This document shows positions 1 to 62,943 of a stretch of 64,000 bases of DNA, one piece after another. Source of the DNA: Epithemia pelagica (Eukaryota > Protista > Bacillariophyta); NCBI GenBank assembly GCA_946965045.2, contig OX337233.1, positions 3,100,001 to 3,164,000 on the forward strand. The letters are read 5' to 3'. The number at the start of each line of letters is the position of its first letter. Position 1 is the stretch's first letter. The translations under genes were made by a program, and so were the position numbers. A model generated the notes under the pieces. That model did no database searches. It saw only the letters and a list, made by a program, of their open reading frames with translations, and was not told the DNA's origin.

Positions 1-1955
1 TTGGGAAAGACGAACTCCCCCGTCAAGATGGAAAACTAGAGCGAGAGATAACGCGCGCAAGACAGTTTTGTTCTGGGTGAGAATGGTGAACCAACGCATT
101 CAACGTACAAAAGGATTCGGTGCTTACAAAGTTGTTGCCCATGCTGTAGATATCAATCATTTCGTCCAGAGGTGCATCCATATACTCCTCGGGTGAACGC
201 CACTTTGGTACCAAACAAGTTGACAAAAGAACAAGGACAACAAAACGAGTACAAAACACATAGTGAGCTCCTCCAATAGTAAAGCTTCCATCCACCAATG
301 CCTCGCATACACGTACATCCCCGTGTCCTACTCCATTCTTATATTTGCAGTATTCCTTGTGTTTGTGATCGTACATCATGCCTTCGGCTCGATTAAAGTC
401 ATTGAGTTTGACTCGGACATGGTCCTTGTTGCTTTTTGTTGTTGTAGTTGTCATTAAAAACTGATCCAGTTTGATATCATCGTGGACAATGACACCAAAT
501 CGGTTGTTGTGTAACAAGGCCAAGGCTTTGGACATGTCCAAGGCATGCTCCAACTTTTCAATGGCGGTAAAGGGACTTCGACTGTACACGGTTTTGGATT
601 CCGTGTGTGGTTTTTCAATGGGAATTGTTACGTGAGGTTTTTCTTCACACCGATCCTTGAGACCCAAGGCATCCTCCATGGTCCCACCATCCATGTATTC
701 ACTGAGCAATCCCACGCTGCAATAGCCATAGACATCCACGAGAAGAGGATGTGGTCCAATCGCGGCATAGACGACTCCGTCCTGTATTGATGCAGTGTGG
801 CAACCGAATGATGAGTACGCCTCGATTCAGGAACATACACACTCAGAATATTAAAAAGGGATTGAAACTTACTTGACGGTAGTCGTGCATTTCCTTGAAA
901 GTAAAGTCATCATTGTCCATGGTCGCAAATTTGACCACAAAGGCGTCGGACTGTCGTTTTCGCGTGTCCACCACCAGAGTTTCACGAAAGGAACCTTCAC
1001 TGTCAATTCATATACCAAGCACCAAGAAGAGGGGACGAGTGTGAACAAGAACAAAATCTTGGGCACGTATGGTAGCGTGTCCTTTGCCGAGACAGCACAA
1101 GTCTCCTTGAACTAGAAATATAGACACTTACTCCAAGAAACGCGACAGGCCCGCTAACAGGTAATCATTCAAATCCAATTCATGAAACTTGTTGCAGACG
1201 GGAAACTCTAATTTCTTTTCGACATGAGAGTTTTGACAGGAATAATCCGGTTTGATGCGTCGGTACCCATCATCATCGGTATGATAAGGTGTTCGTTCGT
1301 AATCGTCATCCTGGGCATAGTAAAAATAATGATGTTGTTCATGTTTCTTGTCACGATACTTGGGACCTGGTCCGGCCGTATAATCCCAAATATGACGAGT
1401 GGGGACCAACATATCATGATCGGGTATCGGCACATTATTTCGTATTGCTCCACCACCCTTCTTGTTGGTTGCGGTTTTGGCATCTCGAATGGGATCCCAA
1501 AATTTCATTTCCAAACCGGCAAAGTCAGCACGTCTACCAGGTCGAGACGGAGGAACAACCCGATGCGAGTCGGTCATGTGTACCACGAGTGATATCTTTG
1601 GTGGATTGTAGCGCTGAGAGATGCGAAGGGACGACGCCATGGCACGGACCCATCCAGCATCGGTACCACCAAAGTCTGGAACCCATGGCAGCTTTCTTGA
1701 CAAGGCCAGTGCCAAACACGAGAAGACACCGACGAGTATGACAGCGACCAACACCGTTGTTCGATCCTTGGTATGGATCCACCGTTTGGCAGACCGTTGC
1801 AGTCGAAAAATCCATGACAAGTATCCTTCATTCTGGTTGCCTATTCGAAGCAAGGGACTTTTGGATTTTCCTTTGGGAGAATCCTCCTCCTCTTTTTCGA
1901 TGGCACGGTGCGAGGAGGACGAAGTAGCACGACGACGTTGGTTCAACAAAACCAT
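1..1955 (-). CDS. Kinase K1: membrane-anchored atypical protein-kinase-like gene (PKDCC/POMK-like), 3' end outside the window
   Basis: Deduced exons (minus): 1955-1132, 999-873, 781-317, 202-128, 35-<1, all with GT..AG borders. The spliced product has an N-terminal hydrophobic anchor (TVLVAVILVGVFSCLALAL), an FPVCNKFHE stem, EGSFRET, VVKFA (Lys), HDDIKLDQFL, KLNDFNRAE and WRSPEEY. ATG assigned by comparison with K2. Confidence 0.85.
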
Positions 1956-2249
1956 TCTCTCTCTCAACACATGGTCAAATAAGAGGGAGGATAATTTTGT
2001 GAGTTCGTTGTGAGCTCACAAAATTGTACTCACCCTAGGGGGAGTTTCTTCAGGGGGAGTTTCTATATTTTGTCCACATTATGTCTGAATACTCATACTA
2101 GTCCATAGTTTGATTCTTCGGACATTATTCAGATGTCTCACTGGTACTTAATGGCCAATTTAGTGAGTTCAAGCTGTCGACCGTCTGATTTTTTGGCCAA
2201 TTTTGTGAGCTAAAGAACTCACTGGAACACATGTCCAATGTTGTGAGCT

Positions 2250-2527
2250 AAAGAACTCACTGGAACACAAAAGAAGAAAAAGTTGTGAGCTCATCATCTG
2301 ATATTGTATTGGGCCAAAAAAAGAATTCGCCGGAACACAAAAAAAGAAAAAGATGTGAGCTCGTCATCTGATAATGTATTGGGCCCAGATAAAGAATTCA
2401 CCGGAACACAAAAGAAGAAAAAGCTGTGAGCTCGTCATCTGATGTTGTATTGGGCCTAGATAAAGAACTCCCGGGAGCACAAAAGAAGGAAAAGTTGTGA
2501 GCTCGTCATCTGATGTTGTATTGGGCC
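2250..2527. repeat. ~70-71-bp tandem repeat, about 4 copies
   Basis: GGAACACAAAAGAAGAAAAAGTTGTGAGCTCGTCATCTGAT-TTGTATTGGGCC units recur at about 2262, 2332, 2403 and 2473. A solo fragment lies near 2742-2760. Confidence 0.9.
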
Positions 2528-16612: not shown

Positions 16613-16616
16613 ATTA

Positions 16617-24813: not shown

Positions 24814-24852
24814 ATTTGTTTTTCCTTGGTGATGAATGCATCCAGAAAGAAT

Positions 24853-38119: not shown

Positions 38120-39635
38120 CTATCTTGTTCTCCTTTTGTCCGGACCATGCCCTGCATGCATGTCTCGTAGCGTATTCTCCAACTTTTGCTTATCTATTTG
38201 CAACTGTTTTTCCAGCGCCTTTTCCAACACTGTAATAATCTGGCCAATGTTATATCGATTCTTGGGATCTTGTTCCCAGCATTTTTCAATGACATGAACG
38301 AGTTGGCCTTCGGCATGCGATACATTGGCCCATCGGGGATCCAAAAAGCATCTCTCACCTTGTTTGATTCTCCGTTTGACCTTTTTGTCGTTGCACGTGT
38401 TGGGAAAGAGGAATTCTCCCGTCAAGATGGAAAACTAGAGAGAGAAAAGGAGCGCAAGACATTTTCGTTCTGGGTGAGAATGGTGAACCAACGCATTCAA
38501 CGTACAAAAGGATTCGGTGCTTACAAAGTTGTTGCCCATGCTGTAGATATCAATCATTTCGTCCAGAGGTGCATCCATATACTCCTCGGGCGAGCGCCAC
38601 TTTGTTACCAAACAAGTTGATAAATGAACAAGAACAACAACAGAACGAGTACGGAACGCAATGTGAGCCCATGCCATAGCAAACCTTTCATCCACCACAA
38701 TGCCTCGCAAACACGTACATCCCCTCTTCCTTCTCCATTCCTATATTTGCAGTATTCCTGGTGTTTGTGATCGTACATCATGCCTTCGGCTCGATTAAAG
38801 TCATTGAGTTTGACTCGGACATGGTCCTTGTTGCTTTTTGTTGTTGTGGTGGTCATTAAAAACTGATCCAGTTTGATATCATCGTGGACAATGACACCAA
38901 ATCGGTTGTTGTGTAACAAGGCCAAGGCTTTGGACATGTCCAAGGCATGCTCCAACTTTTCAATGGCGGTAAAGGGACTTCGACTGTACACGGTTTTGGA
39001 TTCCGTGTGTGGTTTTTCAATGGGAATTGTTACGTGAGGTTTTTCTTCACACCGATCCTTGAGACCCAAGGCATCCTCCATGGTCCCACCATCCATGTAT
39101 TCACTGAGCAATCATTTCGTCTTGTTCTTCCACCCCTCTTCTTGTTGGTTGCGGTTTTGGCATCCCGAATGGGATCCCAAAATTTCATTTCCAAACTGGC
39201 AAAGTCGGCACGTCGGCCATGTCGAGCAGGAGGAACAACCTGATCCGAGTCGGTCATGTGCACCACGAGCGATATCTTTGGTGGATTGTAGCGCTGCGAG
39301 ATGCGGAGGGATGACGACATGGCACGGACCCATCTAGCATCGGCGCCACCAAAGTCTGGAACCCATGGCAGTTTTCTTGACAAGGCCAGTGCCAAACACA
39401 AGAAGACACCGACTAGGATGGCAGCAACCAACACCGTTGTTCGATCCTTGGTATGCATCCACCGTTTGGCAGACCGTTGAAGTCGAAACATCAATGACAA
39501 GTATCCTTCATTCTGGTTGCCTTTTCGAAGCAAGGGACTTTTGGATTTTCCTTTGGGAGAATCATCCTCCTCCTCTTCGATGGCATGGTGCGAGGAGGAC
39601 GAAGTAGCACGACGACGTTGTTTCAAGAAAACCAT
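38120..39635 (-). pseudogene. Kinase K2: near-identical copy of K1 with a 725-bp internal deletion
   Basis: Collinear with K1. Junction ACTGAGCAATC|ATTTCGT at 39113/39114 joins K1 position 711 to 1437, removing the stem, exon 2 and the kinase N-lobe. Confidence 0.85.
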
Positions 39636-39999
39636 TCTCTCTCTCAACACATATTGCCTTACAGACAATGTTATGTTCTATTTGGAGTTCGGAGCGAGAA
39701 GGTGTCGTGCTTTCTTTTTTGCTTTATGGTCTCTTTGTATGAATCGTTTGATTTTGATTGTCCCAAGCATGGTCATAAATGGGCGCGTGGCGAGCGAGGT
39801 GCGGAAAATATGATTACTTCAATTAAATAGGTGAGTGGTTTGGTCTTGCCAAGATCTTTGGTCTTGCAAGGGCTCTAGCCTCACAGGAAATTTTGTAGGA
39901 TAACCGTTATCATTGGACATCAGCAGCTTTCCTTCTCACCGAGGGTACCCCCTAGCGGGGGTGAGTCATGAGGATTAGTGACCGGAATTTGATGAGCAT

Positions 40000-41890
40000 A
40001 TCTATCTGGGAGGGTCTCGAAGTGTCGCTGCCACAAAATCCTTTGCGCCCGACTTTAACCATCTCCAGATCCAATTTCTTCTTCCACAAGCGCACGAGTT
40101 GGACCACGACACCACCAATGCCACGAATCGTACGTGGACCACGGTCGACATGACCCTTCCTCGACAGATTTGGGATACTGGAGCTGGACCTGGACCGCAG
40201 TACAAGGATTCGGAGCACGAACACCATTTTTATTTTTACTATGCCCAGGATGACGATTACGTACGGACACCGTATCATACGGATGATGACGGGTACCAAC
40301 GATTGAAACCGGATCATTCTTGTCAAAAGTCCCATGTGGAAAAACAACTCGAATATCCAGTCTGCAACAAGTTTCATGAACTCGATTTGAATGACTACCT
40401 CGGAGCTAATCTGTCGCACTTTTTGAGGTATGGAAGCATGACATGCACACATGAGGGTTTTCTCATGAGTGACTTGTTTGGCATCATCAAACGCACATTT
40501 CTCTCACGGTTCTTGTTTGTTTTCTTGTTCTGCTCTCTCCGCACGGTGTAAACGAATACGATACACAGCGCGGGATGGTTCGCGAGACGCTCGTCGTCGA
40601 CACCCGCCCGAAACGAGACGACGGAGCGTTTGTGGTCAAATTTGCCAGCTTGGAGGACAAACACGATTTTACCTTTAGAGATATTCATGACTATCGCCAA
40701 GTAAGTATACTGCGGTGGTACTGCTAGGGCACAGACGAAAAATGACTTTGTGTGTTTACACCAAGCGGCAGTATCCCCTAACCATTCGTTTGTTCCTTCG
40801 TTCTGTCTACCGTCTTTGAGTATACTTATGGCAGGACGGAGTCATTTTTGCCGCGATTGGACCACATCCCCTCTTGGTGGATGTCTATGGTTATTGCAGT
40901 TTGGGATTGTTGAGCGAATTCATGGATAGTGGCACCATGGAGAACAAACTGCAACTCCAAAATCGTAGTAAACATGACGACGGCAAAAACAAGAGCAAGT
41001 TTATCGTGCCCCTTGAGCAGCCTCACACCGCGTCCGACCAACTTTACAGTATCAGTCCCTTGACACCAGTGGAAAAGTTGGAGTATGCCCTCGACATGGC
41101 GCAAGCCCTGGCCTTGATGCACAACAACGAGTTTGGGGTCATTGTTCACGATGATCTGAAATTGGATCAATACTTGATCCGAAACACCAACCAACAGTCC
41201 ATCGACAAGAATGGTGGTCCTCGCGTCAAGTTGAATGATTTCAATCGTGGCGAAGCCATGATCTACGACCACAAACATGGCGAATACTGCAAATACAAGA
41301 ATGGTCGCGGACGTGGAGATGTACGTTGGATATACGACATCCCAATCGTGGTTGTTCTGCTGGTGTTCGTGTGTGATTTCGGGACGACTCACGTATTGCA
41401 TTGTTGCTTTTCTTGCCGCCGTGGTACTCTTGTATCTCTCTTGTTGGACTCTTTTAGTGGCGATCGCCGAAAGAGTACTATGACAAACCATTGGATGAAA
41501 AGATTGATATTTACAGCTTGGGCAACAACTTTGTATGTGAAAGCTTGTGGAACCACAGAATCTTGCTGTCTCTCTCCATCTGATTGAATTCGTTGTTATT
41601 GTTGTTGATTGCCGTTCCAACAGTTTTCAATCTTGACGGGAGAATATGTCTTTCCGAATACGTGCAATATAACACAGATTCAGAGTCGCATCATGGGAGG
41701 AGAACGATGTTTTTTGGATCCCCGATGGACCATGAATGCATCGCATGCCGAAGGTCAATTGGTCCATGTCATTCAAAAATGCTGGGAAGCCAATCCGGAA
41801 GATCGATATGAAATTCAAGATATTATTGTCATTCTCCAAGAAGCTCTGGAAAAGCAACTGTACTTGGATCAACGGAAGAATGCCGTCTAG
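40000..41890 (+). pseudogene. Kinase K3: 5'-truncated, frameshifted paralog of K7
   Basis: Homology to K7 begins only at about 40000 (YLGGSRSVAATKSF), with no ATG or TM segment. Exon 2 reads GGATGGTTCGCGAG versus K7 GGATACTTTCGCGAG (1 nt shorter). Downstream exons retain HDDLKLDQYL, DFNRGE and WRSPKEY. Confidence 0.75.
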
Positions 41891-42529: not shown

Positions 42530-43593
42530 CTACTGCATGTCCAATTGTACCTGCTTCTCCAGCGCCTGTTTCAATACTGTAATAACTTGTTCAATTCGAT
42601 CGGAGGATTTCTCCTTGAGCTTGAGGAGGAGTGCCCACACGTGACGAGTCGAAGGTCCCCAGGAAAAGGCATTGGGTGCAAAGGGAGAGGAAAGTGGTGC
42701 ATGGGGATGCCACAAATTTAACTGAGGGGCAACTCGATCCAAACAGAGATATCCACATCCCGAATCGGCCACCAAACAATCGGTATCGCGAGGTCTACGG
42801 GCTTGACCAAAAGTGTTTTGGGGCTTTGGGAGGAGGAGGACGTTGTTCTTTGCCATTTTCCTTGGTGGTACGATTCTGGTTCGAACCCTTGGAGGTACGA
42901 TTTTGTGGGTGCCGTGTCTGGTTCACCATCAAACCCCCGCCGGAACAGGGTATGACCACGGTTCGGGCACGTTCGTCGTGTGCCACGACCAGGGCTTGCC
43001 GAAATTGTGAGAGAACCGATTCAAAATAGGGTCGTCCAATCAATTCGTCAATGGTGACATCCAAACTCTGATTGGCCAAGTCGTAGACAATGGCATCCCA
43101 AGAAATCATGGATTGAAATTCGGGTGAATGAAGGACGGATTGCCTCTCCAAGGATCCCTCAAGTGTATATGGTTGGGAGGAGGAATGAGGTGACATCCAC
43201 CACCGCCCCCATCGTAGGAACCACCACGTTTGGCCGACAAGTACAAGACACATCCCCAACGGTACCTTCCACAAGAGGGACAGGGCCACAATGGATTCGC
43301 CAAAGCGTTCGGTAATGCCCACGAAAACATAATCCCTTGAATCAAATCCGTCGAATTCATACGTCGGTCTTGTTCTTGTTGTGTTTGTTGTTGTTAATGC
43401 CGGGTTGTTGCGGTCGTGACATCAAGGGTCGCATCGAGACGGCTGGAGAGTAATAATTGGTATTGCGTGGTTTGTAGAAATAAAGAATTGGCTCTTGAAA
43501 GTTTTCCACCGTGGCATTCCAACTGCCCCGCGAAACAGAAAAGTGAGGAAACAGGCTCTGTAGTCGCGACGTGGAATGACGGGCCTGTACCAA
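42530..43593 (-). pseudogene. Sulfotransferase S1: 5'-truncated, frameshifted copy of S2 whose 3' end is fused to a kinase tail
   Basis: Fragments RHSTSRLQSLF, GITERFGESIVALSLLWKVPL and DTDCLVADSGCGYLCLDRVA in different frames. Ends ...KEKSSD-RIEQVITVLKQALEKQVQLD, which is kinase exon-5 sequence. Confidence 0.75.
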
Positions 43594-43609
43594 TGGAAAG
43601 TATATATAG

Positions 43610-45157
43610 CTAGCGAATCATGTTTGAATCCAACCATTGCAATTGCGTTTCGAGGGCTTGTTGGAGAATGACAATAATGTCTTGAATGTCATATCGATCC
43701 TTGGGATCTTGTTCCCAGCAGTTTTGAATGACATGGACCAATTGGCGTTCCGCATACGATGCATTCGTGGTCCATTTTTGGGGATCCAAAACGCTTCGTT
43801 CCCCCTCCTTGATACGGGTTTGAATCTGTTTCCAATCGCATAAATCGGAAAAGACGTAGTCTCCCGTCAAGATGGAAAACTGATGGGATTGTTGACAACC
43901 ACAACGCCATGGAACGAAACCAACAACGATCAACAAGAACCGCCATATGTGTGTGAGAGAGACAACAAAACATGGGTCCACCACCAACACAAGAGTCATC
44001 CACACAAGATCACAAAACGTACAAAAATGTTGCCCAAGCTGTAAATATCAATCTTTTCATCCAAGGGATGGTCGAAATATTCCCCGGGCGATCGATTCTG
44101 AGCAACAAAACACAAGACAGACAAGGTGATGTGAGAGTCGTCGAAACAAAACACAGACACAGAAACAATCAGTACACGTGCAGATGCGATCCAGATGCCA
44201 AAAAGAACCACGTACCGTTCCCCGACCCCGACCAGTTCGGTACTTGCAGTATTGGCCCTGTTGGTGGTCGTACATCATGGCTTGGGCACGATTGAAATCA
44301 TTTAATTTGACGCGAGGACCACGACTACGAGTGCGGTCGTTGTTGTTGTTGGTGGTGGTTGAACGAGGAGACGATGGTGGGGCAATCAAGAATTGATCCA
44401 ATTTCAAATCTAGTGCACCAGGACACCAAACTCATTGTGGTGCAACAAGGCCACGGCTTGTGCCATGTCGAGGGCATACTCCAACTTTTCCTCTGGTGTC
44501 ATCAACAAGGGACGAATGCTGCTGCTGCTGCTGCTGCTGCGGTCCAAGTGTGGTTGTGGGGACGCGGTCTGAGACGGGTCGTCCATCACTTGGTCCGTCG
44601 TCGTCATTTTCTTGTGGTCGTTGCAGCGACCGGGGAGTTGCAGTTGGTCCTCCAGGGTACCCCGATCCATGAATTCGCTCAACACTCCCAAACTGCAATA
44701 TCCGTACAGGTCCACCAAGAGCGGATGCGGTCCCGTGGCGGCGTAAATAACGCCATCCTGACCAAAAAGGAGGCGATGATCCGTCATGGATAGAGTTAGA
44801 TCCACACGCGCAATACACAAAAGAGATGTGAGCCGTGTAGAGTCCAGACACGGAGACACGAAAGATGGGTCGGTTGTCCAACGAATAAGCACACACACAT
44901 ACAGACACTACTACAAAGGAACGTACTTGGCGAAACTCGAGATAGTCTCGTTTGGTGTAATCGCGGGATCCTTTCAAAGTGGCCACTTTGAGGACCACGA
45001 CTTCTTGTCCCGTAGTGCGCAAGCTGTTTGTGGGGTCATTAGCGCTGCTGCTGCTGCTCGTCGTTGTTGTTGGTGTTGTCGTGTTTGGGGAAGTAACAGG
45101 TCGTTGGTCCAGTACCAACGTTTGACGAAAGGCACCCTCGCTGTGGTGTGTAAGGAG

Positions 45158-45188
<31 letters not shown>

Positions 45189-46485
45189 CACGAAACGTAA
45201 GAATCGTATACGAATGAAATGGCATGGACCAAACCCAAGAAACTGTGTGTGAGAACGACAACCACAAAAAAAGAAAAAGAGAGAGAGAGAACGGATTTGG
45301 TCGCTTGGCGGTGGGGACGGACCTGGGTGGTACACAGTGTTCCATCGACACCACCCCGCAACCAACCAACGACACACGACGTACGTACCCAACCAACCGC
45401 AATGTGGGACTTTGCCTCAACGTGTGGGGAACCGAACGTTCGTGAAAGAGATTGCAGACGGGAAATTCCATGGCCTTGGCCACATGCGAGGATTCACAAT
45501 GATGTGACTTGGTGGTTTTGGTGCGCGTGCCAAGCCGTTCGTAACAATCATCGTCCAAATGACGATGTTTCGTGTCACGGCGTTGCTGCGCCCGTGATTT
45601 GGGCCGCCATTCCAGGGCGGGTGGATTGTCCGACCCAATGACCCTCGTCGGAAACTCGACACGATATTGTGGACTTGTTGTGGTTTGGTTGTTGTTGTCG
45701 TTTGTTGTGGCAAGAGTGTTGGTACGGGTCGGATTGTTGTTGGTAGTGTTGTTGGTACCCCAAAAGGTGATTGTCAAATTGTTGTAATCGGCATCGCCTC
45801 GATTCGTCATCATCATCATGCTGGGACCAACCACAACCACACCGTTGGTGTTGTTCTTGTCCGGATGTGGTTGTAAAAGGGATGGAACCATGTCCGGGGA
45901 ATCGGTCAGGTACACCACCAGCTGGTGCGACAAGTTGTCGTCCTCCCGAATGTGGTGGTGGTGTCGTCGTCTCGTTCGGGTGGTGGTGGTACCACCACTA
46001 TCACTGGGTGAATTCCTTAAGACGAACTGGAACGAAGAAGCAGACGACGACAATGATTCCAGGGTCATGAGACGAACGTCGTCTCCACTCAAAGAAGAAT
46101 GGTCCAAGGCGGGGATGCCAAAGACGGCAATGGTCCAGCAAGCCAGCAATTCAATCACATTCCAGATCCACACGAGCCTGGTTGTGGCACCGACCGTGGT
46201 GGTGGTCCTTGACCCTGGATGTTGACGTCGTGGCCGTGAGGATGAAACGAACGTGATCATGTTGTGGAGCGAGGAACGAACGGGGTGGTCTCCTCCTCTT
46301 TGATGTGGCTGGAACTCGTCGTAATTGTCGTCCTTATCATTCGTGGAGGAGAATGACACGGTGTGGATGATGATGTTGTTGTTGGTGGTGGTGGTGGTGG
46401 TAGACGCTCGTCCTGTCGTCAACAATGAGGACCCATCCGTGGAGGAACAATGGCGACCACCACGGCGATGTTTCAACCACTGCAT
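43610..46485 (-). pseudogene. Kinase K4: K6/K7 chimera with a frameshift in the catalytic loop
   Basis: Exons 46485-45389, 45140-44927, 44757-44216, 44097-44023 and 43879-43610. The catalytic loop reads GTG CAC TA GAT TTG AAA (44410-44412), 1 nt short of V-H-D-D-L-K. Confidence 0.8.
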
Positions 46486-47455: not shown

Positions 47456-49267
47456 TTAGTCATGCCCACGTCCACGAGTATTATTGGGTTCCAGTTTTGA
47501 TTTCTCCTTCTCCGGTTGGAGCCGTGCCCATTCGCGACGCGTGGAGGGTCCCCACGAAAAGGCGTCGGGTGCAAAGGGATAGGACAGGGCTTTCTGGGGA
47601 TGCCACAAGTGTAATTGTGTGGCCACTCGATCCAAACAGAGATAACCACATCCCGAATCGGCCACCAAACAATCGGTATCGCGAAGTGGACGGGCTTGCG
47701 CAAAGGTTACTGATGGTTGTGGTTGTTTTGGACGACGTTGCTGCTGTTTGTCATGGTTCTTGGTAGTACGATTCTGTGCTGGGTTCCTCCGTCTGGTTTG
47801 GTTGTTGTGGTGCGGAATTCCCAACCCACCGCCCGAACAGGGTGTCACAACGGTTGCGGCACATGTCTCTTGTGCCACGACGAGGGCACGTCGAAATTTC
47901 GCAAGCACGGATTCAAAATAGGACCGTCCAATCGTTTCGTCAATGGTCTTATCCAAACTGCGATTGGCCAAGTCATGGACGACGGCATCCCAGGCAGTCA
48001 TGGCTTGAAATTCCGGCGACTGCAAGACGGCTTGCCACTCCGGGGAGCGTGTCGTCATTGTCGTCGTTGTCGTCGAGGGAATAAGGTGACAGCCACCGCC
48101 ACCGCCATCGTAGGAACCACTTCGTTTGGCCGACAAGTACAAGACATCGGCCAACGGTACCTTCCACAAGAGGGACACGGCCACGATCGATTCGTCAAAG
48201 CGTTCCGTCACGCCGACAAAATCATAATCGTCCAAAATGCCGTGCAGCAAATCCGTCGCATTCATGCGTCGTTCTTCCTTGTGTTGACCGGCTTGTGGTG
48301 GCCGGGACAATAAGGGTCGCAGGGATACGGCTTGAAAGTAGTAGTTGGTGTGGCGGGGTTTGTACCGATGCAAAAGTTGTTCCACAAAGCATTCCACCGT
48401 GGCATTGCACAGGCCGCGTGACACATAAAAGTGATGAAACAAACTGAGCAATCGTGACGTGGGATGCCGCACCATGGTCCACAAGAGCGATTTGTCCCGA
48501 TGGCGATGGGCAAAGCGTCGTCGCGCCATGGCATGATCCCAACTGTTGCGACAAATGATAGGAGTAGTGTGGTTGGTGTGGTTGTGGTTGGCCGCCGCCG
48601 CCATGTATTGTCGATCGGCGGCATTGCGGGCCATGCGCAAATGGACCCCAGCCGCGGTACTACCACCCACTTTGGTGGGTTTGCCAAACAACAAGCCTTG
48701 CGTGACGACGGCATTGCGATTGCGACGCCAATTCACGGAATCCAAGGGAGGAAAGCAAGGCAATTGCCCATTGTCAAATCGAGAATAGGGATAGGCACGG
48801 GGTTGGACGGAATGGTGATGTTGCTGCTGACGTTGATGTTGATAATAGTGGTTCCAAACGGGCGATGGAGCAGCAGCGTCCTGGTGATTTCGCGCTTGTG
48901 ATTCCTCATCCTTCCATCCAATGCCAGCATCACTGGGAGGATTGGTTTCGTCATTCTTGTTTCGCAACACTGAGGAATCGACTCCATGTAATGTCTGGTT
49001 TGTGCGGGTCGAATCGGACGGATCGTTCTGGTGGTACTTTTGGTGGGTGGTTGTCCTTGTTGGTGGTGGATGGAATCGAATCATTAGCCGTGTGTGTTTC
49101 GTATGATACGAGGGAACCACCACCACCAACAGGACCAGATACAAGGGCCACAATCGTCGATTACACACGAGGCGTTGGATGGTATTAGTCGTCCCGAGGA
49201 GGCGACGAGGATGAGGAGGAAAAGGAACAACCCATGGCCTTGATCTCGTTCGGGTCGTCATGGTCAT
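47456..49267 (-). CDS. Sulfotransferase S2: galactose-3-O-sulfotransferase-like type II membrane protein, intact
   Basis: Single long ORF with a hydrophobic segment (WPLYLVLLVVVV), PAPS 5'-phosphosulfate loop KPTKVGGST, 3'-phosphate motif VRHPTSRLLS and YDFVGVTERFDES. Start Met inferred. Confidence 0.8.
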   Translation of the reverse strand: MTMTTRTRSRPWVVPFPPHPRRLLGTTNTIQRLVCNRRLWPLYLVLLVVVVPSYHTKHTRLMIRFHPPPTRTTTHQKYHQNDPSDSTRTNQTLHGVDSSVLRNKNDETNPPSDAGIGWKDEESQARNHQDAAAPSPVWNHYYQHQRQQQHHHSVQPRAYPYSRFDNGQLPCFPPLDSVNWRRNRNAVVTQGLLFGKPTKVGGSTAAGVHLRMARNAADRQYMAAAANHNHTNHTTPIICRNSWDHAMARRRFAHRHRDKSLLWTMVRHPTSRLLSLFHHFYVSRGLCNATVECFVEQLLHRYKPRHTNYYFQAVSLRPLLSRPPQAGQHKEERRMNATDLLHGILDDYDFVGVTERFDESIVAVSLLWKVPLADVLYLSAKRSGSYDGGGGGCHLIPSTTTTTMTTRSPEWQAVLQSPEFQAMTAWDAVVHDLANRSLDKTIDETIGRSYFESVLAKFRRALVVAQETCAATVVTPCSGGGLGIPHHNNQTRRRNPAQNRTTKNHDKQQQRRPKQPQPSVTFAQARPLRDTDCLVADSGCGYLCLDRVATQLHLWHPQKALSYPFAPDAFSWGPSTRREWARLQPEKEKSKLEPNNTRGRGHD

Positions 49268-49603
49268 GATGGTGGTGTCGGTGCGAGAGAAAGGGTAGCT
49301 ACTCGTGTGTGTCACGCATTGGGATTCCTTCGCGCGCGGCGACATGGGTTGCGCGCACGCCGAGCAAAGAAGCAAGGATCCGTTGCCCATGGATCCGATG
49401 CAGACTTTTGTGTGTGTTTTGTGGATATGAGAACCGAACGATAGATCTGTATACCGCGTAGATGAAAGAGAGAACACCCACCAGCCAAAAGCAACCGAAC
49501 GAGCACACGAGACAGTGAAGCATCTCCTCGATTCCCTTGGAAACGACTGGGGTACCCCCTACTACAGAGATCAAGATCGAGAGACACACATGTCCCTACC
49601 AGC

Positions 49604-50001
49604 ATGATGTGGTTGAAACAACGTCGTCGTCGATCCACCACCACGCCCTCTTCAGCACCACCATTACAAGAAGCATCCACGCTCCAACACTCCCCCACCA
49701 ATACGACGAATCGACAGGCTGCTGCGGCGACGGCTCTTCGAAACCACCACACCACCAAACGGTCCATAATTATGACGATTCGGCGCCTCGTCGTCGCACC
49801 ATTGGTCCACGGGTCCCTTTTATCGAGGATTGGAATGGTCGCGATTATTCTCATGATCAGTGTCGTGGGTCTCCTCCGTCTCATTCTTGGTTGGACATTT
49901 GGGGGGCGAGCCGCAATGAATACTACCAAATTGGGCCACCAAGAGGAGGGATGGTCATGGTCGTCGTTGGGTTCCACCACAACACGCCATGACGGGGCAC
50001 C

Positions 50002-50044
<43 letters not shown>

Positions 50045-52086
50045 GACCTTGTTGGTTCACCACCACCATCCAGTACGGAGGAACCCCGAACCACCACCAC
50101 CACTCTAGTCGTGTACCTGACCGGTTCCCCACAGCTGTTGCCCCTGGACCGGATCCAGTATCGTCCCGATTATAATGATTTGGAACTAACCTTTGGGCGG
50201 GCATCATCCCCCAACAACAACCACCACCACAATGACACGGCCGGAACAGTACCACCACCACACGATGTCTACACCACGCGACACGTATGGGATTTCACCG
50301 CGGGACCAGGGCCGTACTACAAGGATGCGCATCATGAATACAAGGTTCAAAAGTATTCCGTTTGGGCCAAAAAGGACCAGGACCATAAGGAACGGACACT
50401 CATCCATCATCACAATGGCACCCACCGCATCCCGACCACGCATAATGATGATTCCTGTGAACTGTCGCATGTGGAACAGCACATGGAATTTCCAGTCTGC
50501 AACCACTTTCATGAATTGCCCGTGCAGGACTATCTTCAATCGGATACCGCGCGGTTTTTGGGGTACGTCTCCATCGAAACCATGGGATGGTGATGGAAGC
50601 GGCGCGGTTTGGGCGTTCCTACTCTTCTAACACTTTCACCTCTTTTGCTGCTCTCTTTTTATTGTTGTTGTTGTTGTTGGTCATTGGGTCGTTCCGTACC
50701 ATATGTTTCAGGCATGGTGTGTATCGCGACACGCTTGCGGTGGACCTGCGAACCCAGAGTCATCCGGCGGACAATGCCTTTGTCATCAAGTGGGCCACCT
50801 TGTCGGGCAATCACGACTTTACGTTCAAGGAACTGGAGGAGTATCGCAAAGTAAGTCCTCACACCATTCGTCTGCTGGCGTCGACTGTTGCCACAACCGT
50901 CCTGCTCACGACGCGACTGTGCTGACCGCCCATGCTCACACACTATACCTTTACACGCCATGATGATGATGATGAGACAGGACGGCGTCATGTATGCCGC
51001 CATGGGACCGCATCCACTCTTGGTGGATATGTATGGATATTGCAGCGTGGGATTGCTCAGTGAATTCATGATGGGTGGTACCCTGGAGGACGCACTGGGA
51101 GTACCAGATCGATGCAACGACACAACGGAACCAGACAACCACAATCATCACCAAACCATTCGAGAGCCAATCATCCCACCGTCGAACCAGCATGGGCACA
51201 CGCACCGTCGTCCTTGGTCGGCCGTGGAAAAGCTTCAGTTTGCCTTGAATGTGGCCCAAGCCGTGGCCTTGTTGCACAACAACCAGTGGGGTGTTATTGT
51301 GCATGGGGATCTCAAATTGGACCAATTTTTACTGACAAAGAACAACAACAAGGACAACAACAACAACGGCAACAACAACAGCCCTGTCCGTGTCAAACTC
51401 AATGACTTTAATCTCGCCGAGGCCCTACTGTATGATTACCAGCACAACAAGTATTGCCAATACAACAATCACGAAGCCCATGGTGATGTACGTACTACGG
51501 TAAAAAACAACCACTCGAACAACACACACATATATATATTGGAGGACAGACTTGTGTGTGTGTGTATGCGTGTCTTTAGAGTACGATGCCTCATGTCCTG
51601 TTTGTCATTTGTTGTTGGTTTCGTGTTCCGTATTCCTTGTTTTCTGCTTGTCAACAGTGGCGCTCCCCCGAAGAGTATTTGGATCGTCCCGTTGATGAAA
51701 GGATTGACATTTACGGCATTGGCAACATTTTGGTACGTCCAGCAGCGCGCTGCACTTCAGTTCTCTATACATGTGTATTATTTGTGGTTGGTCTCGCTTC
51801 GTCCCTCATCTCTCCCCACACACAGTTTTCCATCTTGACGGGATCCATTGTTTTTCCCAACACTTGTAGTGTGAGGCAGGTCCAAAAAAAAATTCAACGG
51901 GGCGAACGAAGCGTTTTGGATCCCCGCCATTGGGCCAATGTATCCTATGCCGAAGGCCAACTCGTCCAGGTGATTCAAAAGTGTTGGGAACACGATCCAC
52001 AGGATCGCTATCGCATTGAACAAGTGATTTCCGTATTGCAACAGGCGCTTGTCAAACAGCTGCAATTGGATCAACAGAAACGATGA
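49604..52086 (+). CDS. Kinase K5, apparently intact
   Basis: Exons 49604-50562, 50712-50850, 50981-51487, 51658-51732 and 51826-52086 with GT..AG borders. TM segment, poly-Q (CAA run at about 50000-50045), FPVCNHFHE, VIKWA, HGDLKLDQFL, DFNLAE and WRSPEEY. Confidence 0.85.
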
Positions 52087-52199: not shown

Positions 52200-53150
52200 G
52201 CCATGGTGGAGGAGGACCTGTTGTCGCAATAGTTTGGAGGTTCCCTCTGCGCTTGTTTCACTTGGAGTATTACTCTGAAGAGGTCAAAACTACTTGGATT
52301 CCGCTCGAGAAGAAGAATGCGGTCGCTTCTGGTTTTTACGACCACACGGCTGAAACGGTTCCAACCACCCCCACAAGTACCAGAACGACCCGTCCAACAA
52401 TTCGTCCCATACATCAAACCAGCAGACAAAGAAGCACGTGGAATCCTCCTCCTTGCGAAAGACTGATGAAACCAAGCCTCCATGTACTGTCATTGGATGG
52501 ATCGAGGAACAGCAGCAAATCACCAGGACCAGGACGCTGCTTCTCCATCCAGAATCCAGACGCCATCTCCCTTTTGGAACCAATAATGTCATCATCAGCC
52601 TCAACGTCATCAACAACATTCGGCGCAACCACGTGCCTTTTCCTATGCTTGATTCAACGACAGTCGTTCGTTTGCCTTCTTTTCCTCCTTTGGACAAGGT
52701 GAACTGGCGTCGCAATCTTAATGCTTTCGTGACGCACGCAATGATTTTTTTGGCCTTGCCGAACAATTCGTGAATGTGCCGAAACAGTCGTGTCACCTTG
52801 TTCCGGCGGTGGGTTGGAGATTCCCCACAACTGCCCTCAGAAACACGATCGTACCCAGGGTTCGAACCACAACAGTATCAAGGGTTCTAGGTAGGAACCA
52901 AAGTTCTACCACCACCATGGGTCATGGCAAACAGCAACGTCCTCCTTCTCCTCCCCCCAAGCCCCACAACAACAACAGCAGCAATTGACCACCTTTGGTC
53001 ATGCCCGACGACCTCGCGATACGGATTGTTTGGTGGCCGATTTGGTTCGAGTTTCCACTACTTTCCTATCCCTTTGCCGCCGACGCCTTTTCCTGCGGGA
53101 CCCTTCACACGCCACGAGTGGGCACTTCTCTACGAGGAGAAGAAGACGAA
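52200..53150 (+). pseudogene. Sulfotransferase S3: degenerate, internally deleted plus-strand copy
   Basis: YQNDPS, PPLDKVNWRRN.NA.VT, then a jump to TVVSPCSGGGLEIPH and GHARRPRDTDCL. All are homologous to S2, but the catalytic middle is missing. Confidence 0.7.
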
Positions 53151-53600
53151 CATGAAGCTCAATGACCATTGCAACCGCCAGAACCAAGTAATACTGCGAC
53201 TCATGGTCATCGTCGTGACGAATGGCGGAATTTAATCGGGGCCTTGTCGATTGTCAAGGGCACACCAACGAGTTTCCCACAAGATGCTTTTGTTTCAATC
53301 TTGACATATTCATTGGTCAGACAGTCTCCTCCACCATCATCCTCTGTGCACACCCTCTGCAAAGTGTCATTGCAAAAACATGGTGGACGGTCCTACAACT
53401 ATTCGAAAACCATGCCAATATTGTCCTTTAAGCTCTACACGCGATACGAGTCGAAAGGCAAGTTCACAATTACGATAATTAACGGAGAGACTTAACCGAT
53501 CAATTGTGGCAATTGAACTTTTCACTGGATCGGTTGTCCTGTCGCTGAAAAGCGCAGAAACATCTGGAGGACCGAACACGGACCCACTCGCACAATTGAT

Positions 53601-56048: not shown

Positions 56049-56153
56049 CTCGTGCGTCTCGAGTAGCGCTGGTACAATTTCTACGGCAGACGATGGCGAG
56101 ACTTTTTGGTTTTACGTGGGATTGGTACAACTTCTACAGATGCGACTTGCGAG

Positions 56154-56802: not shown

Positions 56803-59731
56803 ATGCCGTGGTTGAAACACCGTCGTGATCGTATGAGTAGTCGCCATTCCACTTCGTCGTGGACGGTTGCGTCCACCAACACCACCAACAACAATAACAA
56901 CAACGACAACACATCAGTACCACCACCACCCACTGACAACAAAGACGGCAACAACGGCAAGGAGACCCGAACCATTTCTTCAGTTTCGCGCCCCGTTTTC
57001 AGCAGCAGCAACAACACCGACTCTTACAGGATGCGCCGTTTCAACAAATCCAGCGAGTTTGTGTCTCCGCTCCACACCATCGTTTCGCGAGCAAGAGGAG
57101 GACGACCACAAGGGTCGACAACCCACACGACGACGACAACGACAACGACAACAACAACCACAACACTCTTGTGGATCTTGAATGTGATTGGGTTGCTGGC
57201 TTGCTGGACCATTGCCGTCTTTCGCATGCCCGCCTTGGACCATTCTTCTTCGAGTGGAGACGACGTTCGACTCATGACCCTGGAATCATTCTCCTCGTCG
57301 TCTGTTTCTTCATTCCAGTTAGTCTTAAGGAATCCACCCAGCAATAGTGGTGGTACCACCACCCGAACGCGACGACGACACCACCACATTCGGGAGGACG
57401 ACAACTTGTCGCATCAGCTGGTTGTGTACCTGACCGATTCCCAGGACATGGTTCCATCCCTTTTACAACCACACCAGGACAACAACAACAACACCAACGT
57501 GGTGGTTGTGGTTGGTCCCACCATGATGATGATGATGAATCGAGGAACTGCCGATTACAACAATTTGACAATCACCTTTTGGGGTCCCAACACTACCAAC
57601 AGCAATCCGACCATTAACAATACTCTTGCCGCATACATCAACAACATCAACAAAACCACAAGTCCACCCCATCTCGAGTTTCCTACCAGGGTGATTGTGT
57701 CGGACGATCCACCCCTGGGGTCGCGGCATAAATCACGGACGCAGCAACGCCGTGACACGAAACATCGTCATTTGGACGATGATTGTTACGAACGGCGCAA
57801 CATGCCCCGAAAAACCAAAGCCTGTGAATCCTCGCATGTGGCCAAACACTTGGAATTTCCCGTTTGCAATCTCTTTCACGAACATTCGGTTCCCCACAGT
57901 TTGATGCAAAGTCCCACATCGCGCTTCGTTGGGTACGTCGAATGTCGTGTACATATATATCGAGAGAGAAAGACCTCGAATGTCGTTGGTGGCTGGTAGC
58001 TGATGGAAACACAGTGAACCAACGTGCAGCCCGTCCCTCCGCCATGCGGCCAAATCCGTTCTTTGTCTTTTCTTGTTCTCACACAGTGCTTGTTTTTTTG
58101 TTCGTTTGTTCCATGCCATTTCATTTTCATGTCTCCCTCTCTCCTTCTGGTTTGTCCCACCACGACGCACAGCGAGGGTTCCTTTCGTCAAACGTTGGTG
58201 ATGGACCAACGACCTGTTTCTTCCCCAAACACGACAACAACGACGACGAGCAGCAGCAGCACCAATGACCCCAATCACAGCTTGAGCAATACGGGACAAG
58301 AAGTCGTGGTCCTCAAATTTGCCACGTTCAAAGGATCTAGCGATTACACCAAACGAGATTATCTCGAGTATCGACAAGTACGTTCCTTTGTAGTGTCTGT
58401 GTGTGTGTATTTATGTGGACAACCGACCAATCTGTCTTGTCTTTGTGTATGTCCTATACACGGCTCACGCGTGTCTATATCTCTATTACGGATCACTGCC
58501 TCCCTTCTCCTTTGATTTCCCTGTGCGTGTGCACGTGTTGGTCAGGATGGCGTCATCTACGCCGCCACGGGACCGCATCCGCTCTTGGTGGACCTGTATG
58601 GGTATTGCAGTTTGGGATTGTTGAGTGAATACATGGAGGGTGGGTCCGTCGATGACGTCTTTGGGGCACGCCAACGCTGTGATCGACCCAACACTACCAT
58701 TCCTCTGGAATACACCACCACCAACAACAACAACAGCAATGTGTCACTACCACCATTGGACAACCAGGAGACGGTGTATTCGATTAGTCCCTTGACGGCC
58801 CTGGAAAAATTGTACTTTGCCTTGGACATGGCTCAGGCCGTTGCCTTGTTACACAACAACCGATACGGTGTCATTGTCCACGATGACATTTGGTTGGCGC
58901 AATTCTTACTTTCCAGTCCTCGCCACACGAATTCTACAAATACTTGGTTGGGACAACAAGGACGGCTTCCACGGATCAAACTCAATGACTTTAATCGAGC
59001 CGAAGCCATGATGTACAACTACGAGGAGAAGCGCTATTGCAAATATCAGAATGGCAAGGGAAACGAAGATGTACGTGTAGAATGCTGCTTGGTCGTGTAC
59101 CAACTACTACCATCCCGGTATTCGGATTGTGCCTCACACGACACAATGTCCTTTTGTTATCTCGTTGTTGTTGTCCTTTTTTGGTTCTCCACCCCAGTGG
59201 CGTTCCCCCGAAGAATATTTTAACAATCCTCTCGATGAAATGATTGATATCTTTAGTTTGGGCAACAACTTTGTAAGTGCAGGATGTGTCAGATGAGGCA
59301 CAACAATGGGGCTTTCGTGCATCGTGACTCATACGAATTGTGGTTGGTTTCGTTTTTGTGTTTTGCCCATGACCTACTACTACCTACTTCTACTCCAGTA
59401 TACACTCTTGACGGGGGAATTTGTCTTTCCCAATACGTGCCGTTACAGACAGGTTCAAGACAAACTCCGACGGGGTGAACGAAGCTTTTTGGATCCCCGC
59501 TGGGCCAATGTCTCGCACGCCGAAGGACAACTCGTCCATGTGATTCAAAAGTGTTGGGAACAAGAGCCGCAGGATCGTTATCGCATTGAACAAGTTATTA
59601 CAGTATTGGAACAGGCGCTGGAAAAACAGTTGCAATTGGATAACACGAAAATGATGGTGAAGAAGAAGACGAAGAAGACGAAGAAGACTCGGAAGGATGT
59701 GGATGATCCAACACTGTCTCGCACGGTGTGA
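56803..59731 (+). CDS. Kinase K6, apparently intact
   Basis: Exons 56803-57932, 58173-58377, 58546-59070, 59198-59272 and 59399-59731. TM segment LLWILNVIGLLACWTIAVF, FPVCNLFHE, VLKFA, HDDIWLAQFL, DFNRAE and WRSPEEY. Confidence 0.85.
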
Positions 59732-60633
59732 GGGCAGACTGTTGTGGACTCATGAACATTTGTACAGTGAATCGGAGGTTACCAGGCAATGTCCAAACAC
59801 AGCGCTTGTTCCACTTTTGCCTTTTCTTGTCGATCCGATTCTGCCTCTACTTGATGTGTAGCTTCCGAGTCCCATTCCAGGGAGGACAGTCCATCCAATC
59901 TCGAGATCTCGAATGGACCGCTAATTGTACATTACGGAATCTACCTACCTCTAGGAACAATTCACATCGACATCTGGATGAAAAGAGTCTATTCCACTCC
60001 TTGATAAAAAATACTGAAGTTGGAATAGTCATTCGTCGTATGGGTTCTCGTAGACCATGCGGCGACCAGATGGGGGACCTTGGGGGAACTGGAGATATTT
60101 CAAAAGCGTAAGAATAACGGTAAAGAGGATGCCTGGCGATATCAAGACCAAATCAAGTTTCGCACCTCATCGTCCAACGTTCGTCCAATTTCCAAAATGG
60201 TGGCAAGTTGCAAGTTGCAGCCACCCGGCAACGAGCTGAGCGAGAATGACCTATCTGCGATTTGTAATTACACCGCCCTTTAATTGGCCCGGATTTGAAA
60301 ATCTCTCCAACGGAAAACGAGCACAGGATCAAGAGCAAAAGTTCTACTGCCCACTCGAACACTTTAGATAATTTTAAGTAGGAGTATGAAAAGAGGCTTT
60401 TGTAGTCACACGTGCCTTGATCCCTCCAAAGTTCCTCAACGTCATCAGCCGACCAATATTGGGAAATTTGCTCACTTTTTCTCGAGAAACTCCAGCCAAA
60501 ATTGCTATCCCCGCTGCGGAAACAATGCCACCGCTGCCGATTGTGAGTATCCAAGAACTTGCTTGTTCGTACAATTGTTGGTTTTGGTCGTAACTCATAG
60601 AATCAACGTTCAACTTGTGAAAGACAAAACACA

Positions 60634-62943
60634 ATGATGCTCACATCCCCGTTGACGGGGGCCAAAGGAAGACAGCAGTCCATCGGCGTCTCCCTACGAG
60701 GATCCATTGACAGTTCGGAGAGGAAACCAGTGATGCAAAGACTTTCCGTCTCTCTCAATCTTCTCTTTCATTCCACGAGAAGACAACCAAAAAGACTCCT
60801 ATTGTGGATCATTAGTAGAACAGGCCTCATTCTGTGCCTCATTGTGGCTTTTTCGCTGGGACCACCATTGTCGTCTTTGTCGTTCCACTACCATGGGGCA
60901 GAGCACTTATGGCGTCCTGTTGCGTCATCCTCTCGACGATCCTCGACATCTTATTTTCGTGCCTCTCATAAATACGAACGACACACGGCACTGAACGAAT
61001 GGAATGACAAGAAGAATGCACATCCGCACTTTCTATCCCGTCATTCCTCACCAACCCAGTCTCTGTTGGTTCATTTGGGTGGGTCTCGAGGTGTCGCTCC
61101 CACCAAGTCCTTCGACCCTGACTTTAACAAGCTCAAGATGCAATTTCCCCTGCCGCAAGCACACGAATTGGACAACGAGGACACCACCAATGCCACCCAA
61201 CGTACGTGGACCACTATGGATACGGCCATTCCTCGAAAGATTTGGGATACTGGAGCTGGACCCGGACCACAGTACAAGGATTCCGACTACGAATACAATT
61301 TTTATTATTACTATGCCAAGGATGACGATTACGTTCGGACACCCTACCATACCGATGACGACGGGTACCAGCGACTCCAACCCGATCATTCTTGTCAAAT
61401 GTCCCATGTCGAAAAGCAACTCGAGTTTCCCGTCTGCAACAAGTTGCATGAACTCGACTTGAATGACTACTTGGGCGCGGATCTGTCACATTTCTTGAGG
61501 TAAGGGACTCCTGATATATCAAGGAAAGTTGTCGTGTTGTCAGCAAACGCACATTCCCCTCACCACGGTTGTGTTCACTCTGGATCGGAACTTTGCAACA
61601 GCGCGGGATACTTTCGCGAGACGCTCGTCGTGGACACCCGTTCGCAACGAGACGAGGGTGCGTTTGTGGTCAAATTTGCCAGCATGAAGCACAAGGACGA
61701 GGACGATTTCACCTTTTCCCACTTTCATGACTATCGCCAAGTAAGTAGTGATGCTTCAAACAAAACAAAAATGAGCGTGTGTGTCAGGATCTGCTAACCT
61801 CCGTGTTCGTCGTCACCCATGTATGTGTGATTTTGTGCATACCAGGACGGAGTCATTTTTGCCGCCATTGGACCACATCCCCTCTTGGTGGATGTGTACG
61901 GGTATTGCAGCATGGGATTGTTGAGTGAATTCATGGATCGGGGTACCATGGAGGACAAACTGCATCTCCAAGATCGCTGTGAACAGCAGGACGACAAAAA
62001 GAAGGGCAAGTTTGTCGTGCCCCTCGAACAGTCTCACACCGCGTCCGAGCAACTCTACAGCATTAGTCCCTTGACACCCGTGGAAAAGTTGGAATATGCT
62101 TTGGACATGGCGCAAGCCTTGGCCTTGTTACACAACAACGAGTTTGGTGTCATTGTGCACGATGATTTGAAGTTGGATCAATTCCTGATTGCCCAACCAT
62201 CTTCTTCTCCTGCAAGCACCACCACCCACGGCCGTAGAAGCAGTGGTCCTCGCGTGAAATTAAATGATTTCAATCGTGGCGAAGCCATGATGTACGACTA
62301 CCAACATGGCGAATACTGCAAATACCGAAATGGTCGTGGCCGTGGACCGGTACGTTGCATCCTCTGGATCGAATCTGCACTTTTGTGCTGGTTGTGTGTG
62401 CGTGTGTGCATGTTTCGACAAGAACTCTCACACCTTGCCTTCTTGTTTCGTTTCTCAGGCGCGATCGCCCGAAGAGTATTTTGACCATCCCCTTGATGAA
62501 AAGATTGATATTTACAGCTTGGGTAACACTTTTGTACGTTGTGTCATCATATACGTAGAGACCTCAGGTGTTGGCGGTGGACCCACGTTTCGTTCTCTCT
62601 CTCACACATGGTTGTTCTTGTTTTTGGTTGGTTTCGTTCCATGTCGTTGTTGTTGCTGCTGCTGCCAAACCCACAGTTTTCCATCTTGACGGGAGAACAC
62701 GTCTTTCCCAATTCGTGCGATACCAGACAGGTTCAAAAGCGCATCAAGGAGGGGGAACGAAGCTTTTTGGATCCCCGATGGACCACGAATGCATCTCATG
62801 CCGAAGGTCAATTGGTCCATATCATTCAAAAATGTTGGGAAGCCAATCCGGAGGATCGATATGCAATTCAAGACATTATTGTCATTCTCCAACAAGCTCT
62901 GGAACAGCAATTGTACCTGGATCAGCAGAAGAATGCCGTCTAG
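60634..62943 (+). CDS. Kinase K7, apparently intact
   Basis: Exons 60634-61499, 61602-61740, 61846-62349, 62459-62533 and 62677-62943. TM segment, FPVCNKLHE, AGYFRET, VVKFA, HDDLKLDQFL, DFNRGE and RSPEEY. Confidence 0.88.

Follow-up and report, generated by a model that had tools for sequence, protein, structure and literature searches.

This analysis concerns a window of 64,000 nucleotides from the diatom Epithemia pelagica (contig OX337233.1, positions 3,100,001 to 3,164,000 of the forward strand), in which an initial annotation, made from the letters alone, had proposed a cluster of seven membrane-anchored kinase genes facing the secretory lumen. Motif scans, tblastn searches with the exon peptides of copy G and reading of three frames revealed seven paralogous kinase copies in the window, as proposed, which are named here A to G (Table 1). 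Six of them are packed in 25 kb and copy A lies about 36 kb apart. Because this stretch without kinases separates A from the rest, the span 1-62943 first assigned to the cluster is much wider than the family that it contains.

Gene structures and lesions of the seven copies

Donor and acceptor sites read from the DNA gave five exons, GT-AG introns of 91-248 nt and intron phases of 2, 0, 0, 0 in copies A, D, E, F and G. The five-exon layout that had been described for all the copies holds therefore for these five, but not for B, due to a deletion, or for C, which is truncated at its 5' end. The only complete and intact kinase copies are E, F and G, which were judged to be open throughout by phase arithmetic alone (codon numbers in Table 1); copy A is intact within the window but crosses its edge. 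Exons were searched singly, and every statement made below on a full-length protein rests on database homologues.

Copy A is apparently intact, with a transmembrane (TM) anchor, a two-cysteine module and the motifs HDD..Q and DFN all present, and its exon 5 remains open for 100 more codons past the start of the window. Copy E carries HGD..Q plus a full G-x-G-x-Y-R loop, and in copy F both the N-terminus and the stem are long and rich in Thr, Asn and Ser, the catalytic loop being HDDIWLAQ.

The other three copies, B, C and D, are pseudogenes, a fact that the initial annotation had missed. An internal deletion with its junction near 39111-39118 put copy B out of frame, having removed exon 2 entirely, along with the end of exon 1 and 24 codons at the start of exon 3. 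Copy C has lost around 145 N-terminal codons and, with them, the TM segment; in addition, its exon 2 (40569-40700) measures 132 nt when 1+3n are needed, one base having been lost in the codons of the Gly loop. Copy D was broken by the loss of a single base inside the H-x-D motif, in such a way that exon 3 has 542 nt and shows TA instead of GAT directly after the His, leading to an in-frame TAG at 44412-44410. From their sequences, E, F and G and probably also A are predicted to be functional, and B, C and D are decaying duplicates.

Copy D is also a mosaic, as it is closest to F over exons 1 and 2 (78% DNA identity) and closest to G (77%) over its 3' part, which takes in most of exon 3 and exons 4 and 5; this suggests recombination or gene conversion among the members of the cluster. 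Between 2 and 38 kb no kinase homology was found, only weak matches to an integrase zinc finger, a Ulp1 protease and a RING domain. Long open reading frames (ORFs) without Pfam matches were seen between A and B (window 2000-38000), and the gap between these two copies is consistent with mobile elements splitting an older contiguous kinase cluster.

Table 1. Kinase copies and sulfotransferase genes located in the window (exons in the order of transcription).
Feature	Position	Strand	State	Exons	Remarks
Kinase copy A	1..1955	(-)		1955-1132, 999-873, 781-317, 202-128, 35-<1	
Kinase copy B	38120..39635	(-)	pseudogene		93% DNA identity to A
Kinase copy C	39982..41890	(+)	pseudogene		related to G
Kinase copy D	43610..46485	(-)	pseudogene	46485-45389, 45140-44927, 44757-44216, 44097-44023, 43879-43610	
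Kinase copy E	49604..52086	(+)	intact	49604-50562, 50712-50850, 50981-51487, 51658-51732, 51826-52086	646 codons
Kinase copy F	56803..59731	(+)	intact	56803-57932, 58173-58377, 58546-59070, 59198-59272, 59399-59731	755 codons
Kinase copy G	60634..62943	(+)	intact	60634-61499, 61602-61740, 61846-62349, 62459-62533, 62677-62943	616 codons
Sulfotransfer_2-type gene	47456..49477	(-)	intact		PF03567, 26.1 bits (cut-off 22)
Second sulfotransferase copy	42605..43581	(-)	fragment		covers residues 337-660 of the intact copy, split across frames; immediately downstream of D
Third sulfotransferase copy	52360..53210	(+)	weaker fragments		downstream of E, mirrors the D side

Family membership, kinase fold and conserved residues

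When a profile of the exon 3 peptide was compared with 1.84 billion representative proteins, 839 matched at E<=0.001 and 306 at E<=1e-10, numbers small enough to show that the profile is specific and does not sweep up generic kinases. The size of the family exceeds 300 representatives at 50% identity. Word-index protein searches with two full-length matches and a 30-sequence alignment as queries retrieved hundreds of proteins, and all the named homologues belonged to pennate or centric diatoms (Phaeodactylum, Seminavis, Nitzschia, Cylindrotheca, Mayamaea, Amphora, Pseudo-nitzschia, Leptocylindrus, Chaetoceros, Coscinodiscus, Attheya and Thalassiosira species). The nearest clusters in the ESM Atlas were likewise from Bacillariophyta. 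Ten full-length homologues scored 51-77 bits on the Pfam models Pkinase and PK_Tyr_Ser-Thr (cut-offs 23.1 and 31.7; E 1e-14 to 1e-21), and single exons from the window gave only sub-threshold kinase matches of 15-21 bits each, as expected for pieces. With the Pfam cut-offs passed and the Lys, the catalytic Asp, the metal-binding Asp and a bilobal fold in place, the family belongs to the eukaryotic protein kinase superfamily.

Over the whole 60.5-Mb assembly, the exon 3 profile gave strong scores only for the seven copies of the window, which are thus the sole representatives of their subfamily in this genome, and detected four distant family members on two other contigs. Among the distant matches, L009 (contig C4:2597892-2601338) contains a single-exon ORF of 501 codons with an anchor, the two-Cys module, HTD....Q and DFN, and L010-L012 contain TGA stops. 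A maximum-likelihood tree was built from the exon 3 region, with an X placed at the break of D to read through it. The seven copies fell there into one clade with a support of 97/97, which also takes in two database ORFs at least 97% identical to B and F; inside the clade, the pairs A+B and C+G(+D) were supported. On this tree, the seven copies are seen as one lineage-specific, locally duplicated clade of a diatom-only family, so the expansion that had been proposed for the family is corroborated at two levels, diatom-wide by the database searches and local by the clade.

All the motifs that had been listed from the window were recovered. The two-Cys module, C..SHV......E(F/Y)PVCN.(F/L)HE, was detected by motif scan at the end of exon 1 in every copy except B. 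The Gly loop reads G-x-G-x-(F/Y)-R in D, E and F, and A and G have a weaker form of it, with another residue for the first Gly. The motif H(D/G)D..L.Q(F/Y)L is present in six copies and broken in D, DFN is found in all seven, and the beta-3 Lys of exon 2 does not vary among the copies. In the 30-sequence alignment, the invariant or nearly invariant positions were the beta-3 Lys, an Asp in place of the alpha-C Glu, H-x-D....Q, DFN and (W/Y)R(S/A)PEE, together with a Y-C in the activation segment, the cysteine of L.G.C and a C-W in the C-lobe. Five cysteines are near-invariant in the family; two of them, 14 residues apart, lie in the pre-kinase module, with a DDD motif upstream.

The Gln of H-x-D....Q was invariant in the same alignment, and the pattern was found in at least 315 of the 327 proteins retrieved. 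Among these 315 members, the x of H-x-D was Asp in 225, and never Arg or Cys. The second position after the catalytic Asp was Gln in 238 of them and Lys in only 10, the window subfamily being among those that keep Lys. Since this position varies, the Trp that copy F has there falls within the range of the family and is not a defect. Two extra cysteines, one following D-R in exon 3 and the other following F-P-N-x in exon 5, recur in just a few close homologues. They co-occur (both in 5 proteins, one in 5 and neither in 162), but this probably reflects a single ancestral gain and is thus weak evidence for a disulfide.

The relation to known kinases was examined both by sequence and by fold. Against the PDB, the exon 3 profile matched plant receptor-like kinases and TAK1 best (E ~1e-5), and the full-family profile matched CSF1R, KIT, FLT3, FGFR1, Trk receptors and TAK1, with E-values down to 1e-19. 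An AlphaFold2 model of the homologue P0007 (mean pLDDT 73, most of the kinase domain >80) retrieved TNNI3K, Roco4, LCK, FERONIA, TAK1 and IRAK4 with Foldseek, and Fes, TGFbR1, Roco4 and BRAF with VIA-align at Z 26-27; compared to solved kinases, it gave Z 24-27 and a root-mean-square deviation of 2.3-2.8 A over ~260 residues, with an identity of 15-24%. In the Atlas fold search with this model, its own diatom cluster was followed by TNNI3K, the plant kinases STY46/CTR1 and leucine-rich-repeat receptor-like kinases.

The closest matches are therefore found among tyrosine kinases (TK) and tyrosine kinase-like (TKL) kinases (TNNI3K, Roco4, TAK1, IRAK4, BRI1, FERONIA and Raf/CTR1; CSF1R, KIT and Fes), with which the diatom family has in common the motifs L.G.C, W..PE and CW..P..R. 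However, these cytosolic domains have HRD, DFG, Asn171 and the alpha-C Glu, whereas the diatom family replaces all four and adds a Cys/acidic module plus a signal-anchor at the N-terminus, instead of occupying a C-terminal position behind a TM segment. The initial annotation had set a grouping with conventional TKL kinases against its own proposal. An affinity for TK/TKL in sequence and fold was indeed found, but given the low identity and the replacement of the HRD Arg, the DFG Gly, Asn171 and the alpha-C Glu, the family is not conventional TKL.

A resemblance to the glycan kinase POMK had also been put forward. In POMK, Gln stands at the position of Asn171 of PKA, the DFG Gly is exchanged for a polar residue, a loop behind the N-lobe carries a Cys pair and the activation segment a Cys; POMK also has Ser at the beta-3 Lys position, a Lys in beta-2, an MCD catalytic motif with a disulfide and a DLD motif (PMC5142810). 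The diatom family has the same Gln, likewise replaces the DFG Gly by a polar residue, and has two Cys N-terminal of the N-lobe plus the activation-segment Cys; it may further resemble POMK in a type II anchor with a lumenal kinase domain, as predicted from hydropathy and charge bias. By contrast, POMK has neither the beta-3 Lys nor an acidic residue in alpha-C nor H/YRD, its catalytic loop contains an additional helix and alpha-G is missing, whereas in the diatom family the Lys, an alpha-C Asp and H-x-D are retained in a canonical fold, DFN stands instead of DLD, and no Cys occurs within H-x-D in 315 proteins. Neither POMK nor Fam20 was seen among the top 60 matches to PDB sequences, the top 50 of Foldseek or the top 50 of VIA-align, or in the top lists of the exon 3 profile and of the Atlas search. 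POMK is known from opisthokonts, with remote homologues in plants (PMC3696010), and, according to a review, the secretory pathway seems to have acquired kinases on several independent occasions (PMC9941534). Of the proposed resemblance, the two active-site substitutions stand and a specific kinship is not supported, and we read the likeness as parallel adaptation.

As for the other secretory kinases, the comparison with Fam20 yielded no specific kinship: in addition to the absence from the sequence and fold matches, none of the ten full-length homologues had a Fam20 match in Pfam, and the Fam20 fold is a different, atypical kinase fold. Fam20C, Fam20B, Four-jointed and RON13 of Toxoplasma, the latter with a non-RD (HFD; without the Arg-Asp pair) catalytic motif (PMC8213820), are functional analogues only, as kinases acting inside the secretory pathway. 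PKDCC/VLK, a secretory-pathway kinase, is similar to the diatom family in scoring as a classic Pkinase/PK_Tyr member (PMC3696010), and differs in being a metazoan protein; no PKDCC cluster was seen among the nearest Atlas models, which is a weak negative. PIP49_C (FAM69) matched one of the ten homologues at 17.9 bits, below its cut-off of 25.2, and was not taken as evidence of kinship.

Predicted topology, activity and substrates

In A, D, E, F and G, a K/R-rich N-terminus of 55-140 residues leads into a single hydrophobic segment (Kyte-Doolittle 19-mer 1.9-2.8), in agreement with the basic N-terminus and single TM segment first described. In these five copies, the anchor has a neutral or acidic C-flank and a more positive N-flank. 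Of 98 homologues that start with Met and carry the Cys module and DFN, 72 also had a strong hydrophobic segment upstream of the kinase domain; among these 72, 56 had a more positive N-flank, 11 showed the reverse and 5 were equal. In some homologues, the hydrophobic segment is located at the extreme N-terminus and resembles a signal peptide. The basic N-termini, the charge difference and its family-wide bias, the signal-peptide-like homologues, the Cys pair outside the kinase core and a sequon in exon 5 all favour a type II orientation, in which the N-terminus would be cytosolic and the kinase domain lumenal or extracellular. The charge bias, in the copies of the window and in the homologues, thus supports the membrane-anchored, lumen-facing kinases of the initial annotation as a sequence-based prediction.

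The sequon, N-(V/A)-S, occurs at the same exon 5 position in all seven copies, for example in 62677-62940(+) and 59399-59728(+), and is absent from the nearest homologues P0007 and P0019. Its conservation among paralogues that appear so recent proves little for the topology.

Under this orientation, each intact protein would have a basic cytosolic N-terminus, one signal-anchor and a stem partly rich in Thr, Asn and Ser, which would end in the conserved acidic (DDD) and two-cysteine module. The kinase domain, presumably competent for catalysis, would project into the endoplasmic reticulum (ER) and Golgi lumen, and may reach the cell surface or the silica deposition vesicle. The active site keeps the beta-3 Lys, the catalytic Asp and the metal-binding Asp, with Asp for the alpha-C Glu, Gln for the second metal-binding Asn, Asn for the DFG Gly and no HRD Arg. 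As non-RD kinases, these proteins are probably constitutively active and not switched by phosphorylation of the activation loop. Their job may be the phosphorylation of silaffin-like cell-wall proteins or of components of the adhesive mucilage, as for the silaffin kinase tpSTK1 of Thalassiosira pseudonana. We infer these substrates with tpSTK1, which the initial annotation had not mentioned, as the best precedent.

By its description, tpSTK1 with its 'tpSTK1-like' paralogues would be the likeliest known relative of the family. Sheppard, Poulsen and Kroger (2010, J Biol Chem) reportedly found multiple tpSTK1-like proteins in diatom genomes, with low similarity to ordinary kinases. The family described here is in turn restricted to diatoms among the named sources, Thalassiosira species included, has 15-24% identity to solved kinases and carries N-terminal anchors or signal-like segments. 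In two papers (PMC4557024, PMC3820600), tpSTK1 is presented as a Ser-specific silaffin kinase of ~60 kDa, associated with the ER/Golgi, which is up-regulated during valve formation and accounts for about a quarter of the silaffin kinase activity. The likeness lies in the diatom origin and, by prediction, in the entry into the secretory pathway and a membrane-associated lumenal kinase acting on cell-wall phosphoproteins, many members of the diatom family being also similar in size. tpSTK1 is described with a cleaved signal peptide, whereas the window proteins have an internal signal-anchor after their basic N-terminus. No T. pseudonana member was named in the lists of the word-index protein searches, and text searches of the literature found no sequence-level description of tpSTK1. 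By this analogy, we give a little better than an even chance that tpSTK1 belongs to the same family as the window kinases. Most likely, then, the window cluster adds members to an already known kind of diatom lumenal kinase, and the family itself is not new.

Taken as a whole, a cluster of diatom-only type II membrane kinases that are lumenal, catalytically competent and phosphorylate secretory cargo is the explanation that we consider somewhat probable. A Golgi-type sulfotransferase gene and two fragments of further copies inside the cluster were counted in its favour. Several points weigh against it. The topology is drawn from hydropathy and charge bias only, and signals for ER retrieval of the KDEL/HDEL type were not found at the C-termini. 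The nearest structures, solved and predicted, are ordinary cytosolic TK/TKL kinase domains, and two of the five conserved cysteines, those of L.G.C and CW, are common features of TK/TKL and are therefore not evidence of disulfides. The substrates are proposed by analogy. The adjacency of kinase and sulfotransferase was absent from the two loci examined in other diatoms, in Cylindrotheca closterium and Nitzschia inconspicua. Finally, RNA runs are absent from the records, and the run used below as a transcriptome is taken to be RNA from its spliced contigs.

Some of the same observations could be explained if these were lumenal glycan kinases, with sugars on glycoproteins or sulfated polysaccharides as the target, as for POMK and Fam20B. 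The Gln at the Asn171 position, the polar replacement of the DFG Gly, the Cys pair just before the N-lobe, the activation-segment Cys and, as predicted, the type II anchor are all shared with POMK, and genes for carbohydrate-type sulfotransferases are interleaved with the kinases. However, the beta-3 Lys and H-x-D are canonical, unlike in POMK, which is missing from the top 50-60 sequence and fold matches, and the adjacency with the sulfotransferases is not conserved; moreover, the only characterised diatom lumenal kinase targets protein serines (PMC3820600). We regard this explanation as unlikely. A related possibility, which we hold for slightly less likely still, is that diatoms independently recruited a TK/TKL-type kinase to the lumen and gave it a POMK-like metal site, from which a large family arose, some members, including the window cluster, phosphorylating glycans or sulfated mucilage and not proteins. 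If true, lumenal glycan kinases would have originated a second time, by convergence.

The affinity to cytosolic TK/TKL domains, which provide the closest structures and sequences, could be taken to mean that the family consists of TKL-like signalling kinases, anchored by their N-terminus to an endomembrane and facing the cytosol; the hallmark motifs L.G.C, W..PE and CW..P..R and the opposite charge bias of 11 of the 72 homologues point in the same direction. Nevertheless, the long K/R-rich N-termini (median ~14-16 K+R before the anchor) would be hard to translocate, the hydrophobic segment of some homologues is signal-peptide-like and located at the extreme N-terminus, the pre-kinase Cys pair is invariant, and the HRD Arg, the DFG Gly and Asn171 are replaced family-wide, unlike in regulated cytosolic TKLs. 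A cytosolic orientation is thus judged improbable, to about the same degree as the recruitment of glycan kinases just mentioned. That the proteins are catalytically dead pseudokinases, or the cluster one decaying to pseudogenes, as three broken copies out of seven and the deviations at DFG, HRD, the alpha-C Glu and Asn171 might suggest, is very improbable, as the deviations are invariant across >300 diatom proteins and therefore point to a specific active site kept under purifying selection, the Lys and the Asp residues for catalysis and metal binding have not been lost, and POMK shows that Gln at Asn171 and a replaced DFG Gly are compatible with activity (PMC5142810).

Lumenal kinases acting on secretory cargo would matter in diatoms because both silica formation and adhesion rely on secreted proteins that are heavily phosphorylated, for which only one responsible kinase, tpSTK1, is characterised. 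The delimited diatom-wide family provides a concrete list of candidates for the missing silaffin kinase activities, recognisable by a signature of signal-anchor, two-Cys module, H-x-D....Q, DFN and W/Y-R-S/A-P-E-E, and it would exemplify a canonical kinase fold adapted to the secretory lumen.

Read contigs and neighbouring genes

Contigs from four sequencing runs of a single study (X1-X4), which may include the source sample, were compared over positions 38900-44890 of the window. The lesions of C and D were reproduced without gaps in contigs of three DNA-like runs (X1-X3), and that of D was also present in a spliced contig of X4. The contigs of X4 showed GT..AG joints exactly at the predicted introns 1, 3 and 4 of C and intron 3 of D, and a loose end at 40835 corresponded to the last 30 bases of exon 2 of copy A, joined to exon 3. 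We take X4 to be a transcriptome, and A, C and D are read accordingly as transcribed and spliced at the predicted sites. With seven copies, three of them broken, and C and D still transcribed, the cluster shows rapid birth and death.

Some details of these contigs concern individual copies. The X4 contig of pseudogene C (40567-41320) has introns 1 and 3 removed and intron 2 (40701-40834) kept. An A-type contig of exons 2-3 in X4 had a k-mer depth around ten-fold above that of the C contigs, and far above that of the D contig. In X1 and X3, a joint 39946->41755 skips 1808 bases, nearly all of pseudogene C; it may represent a second haplotype without C, one side of the joint being backed by only 22 letters. 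In X1, X3 and X4, 37 extra letters were found at 39924/39925.

Regarding the neighbouring genes, the intact Sulfotransfer_2-type gene has its own N-terminal hydrophobic anchor, is located head-to-head with E and lies outside the kinase family. Together with its two decayed copies, it is interleaved with the kinases D and E in mirror orientation. A unit of kinase plus sulfotransferase appears to have undergone duplication as an inverted pair. This adjacency is suggestive at most. The loci of Cylindrotheca closterium and Nitzschia inconspicua have kinase tandems. Between E and F, an 815-codon ORF, 53601-56048(-), encodes a clear bromodomain (PF00439, E 5e-19).

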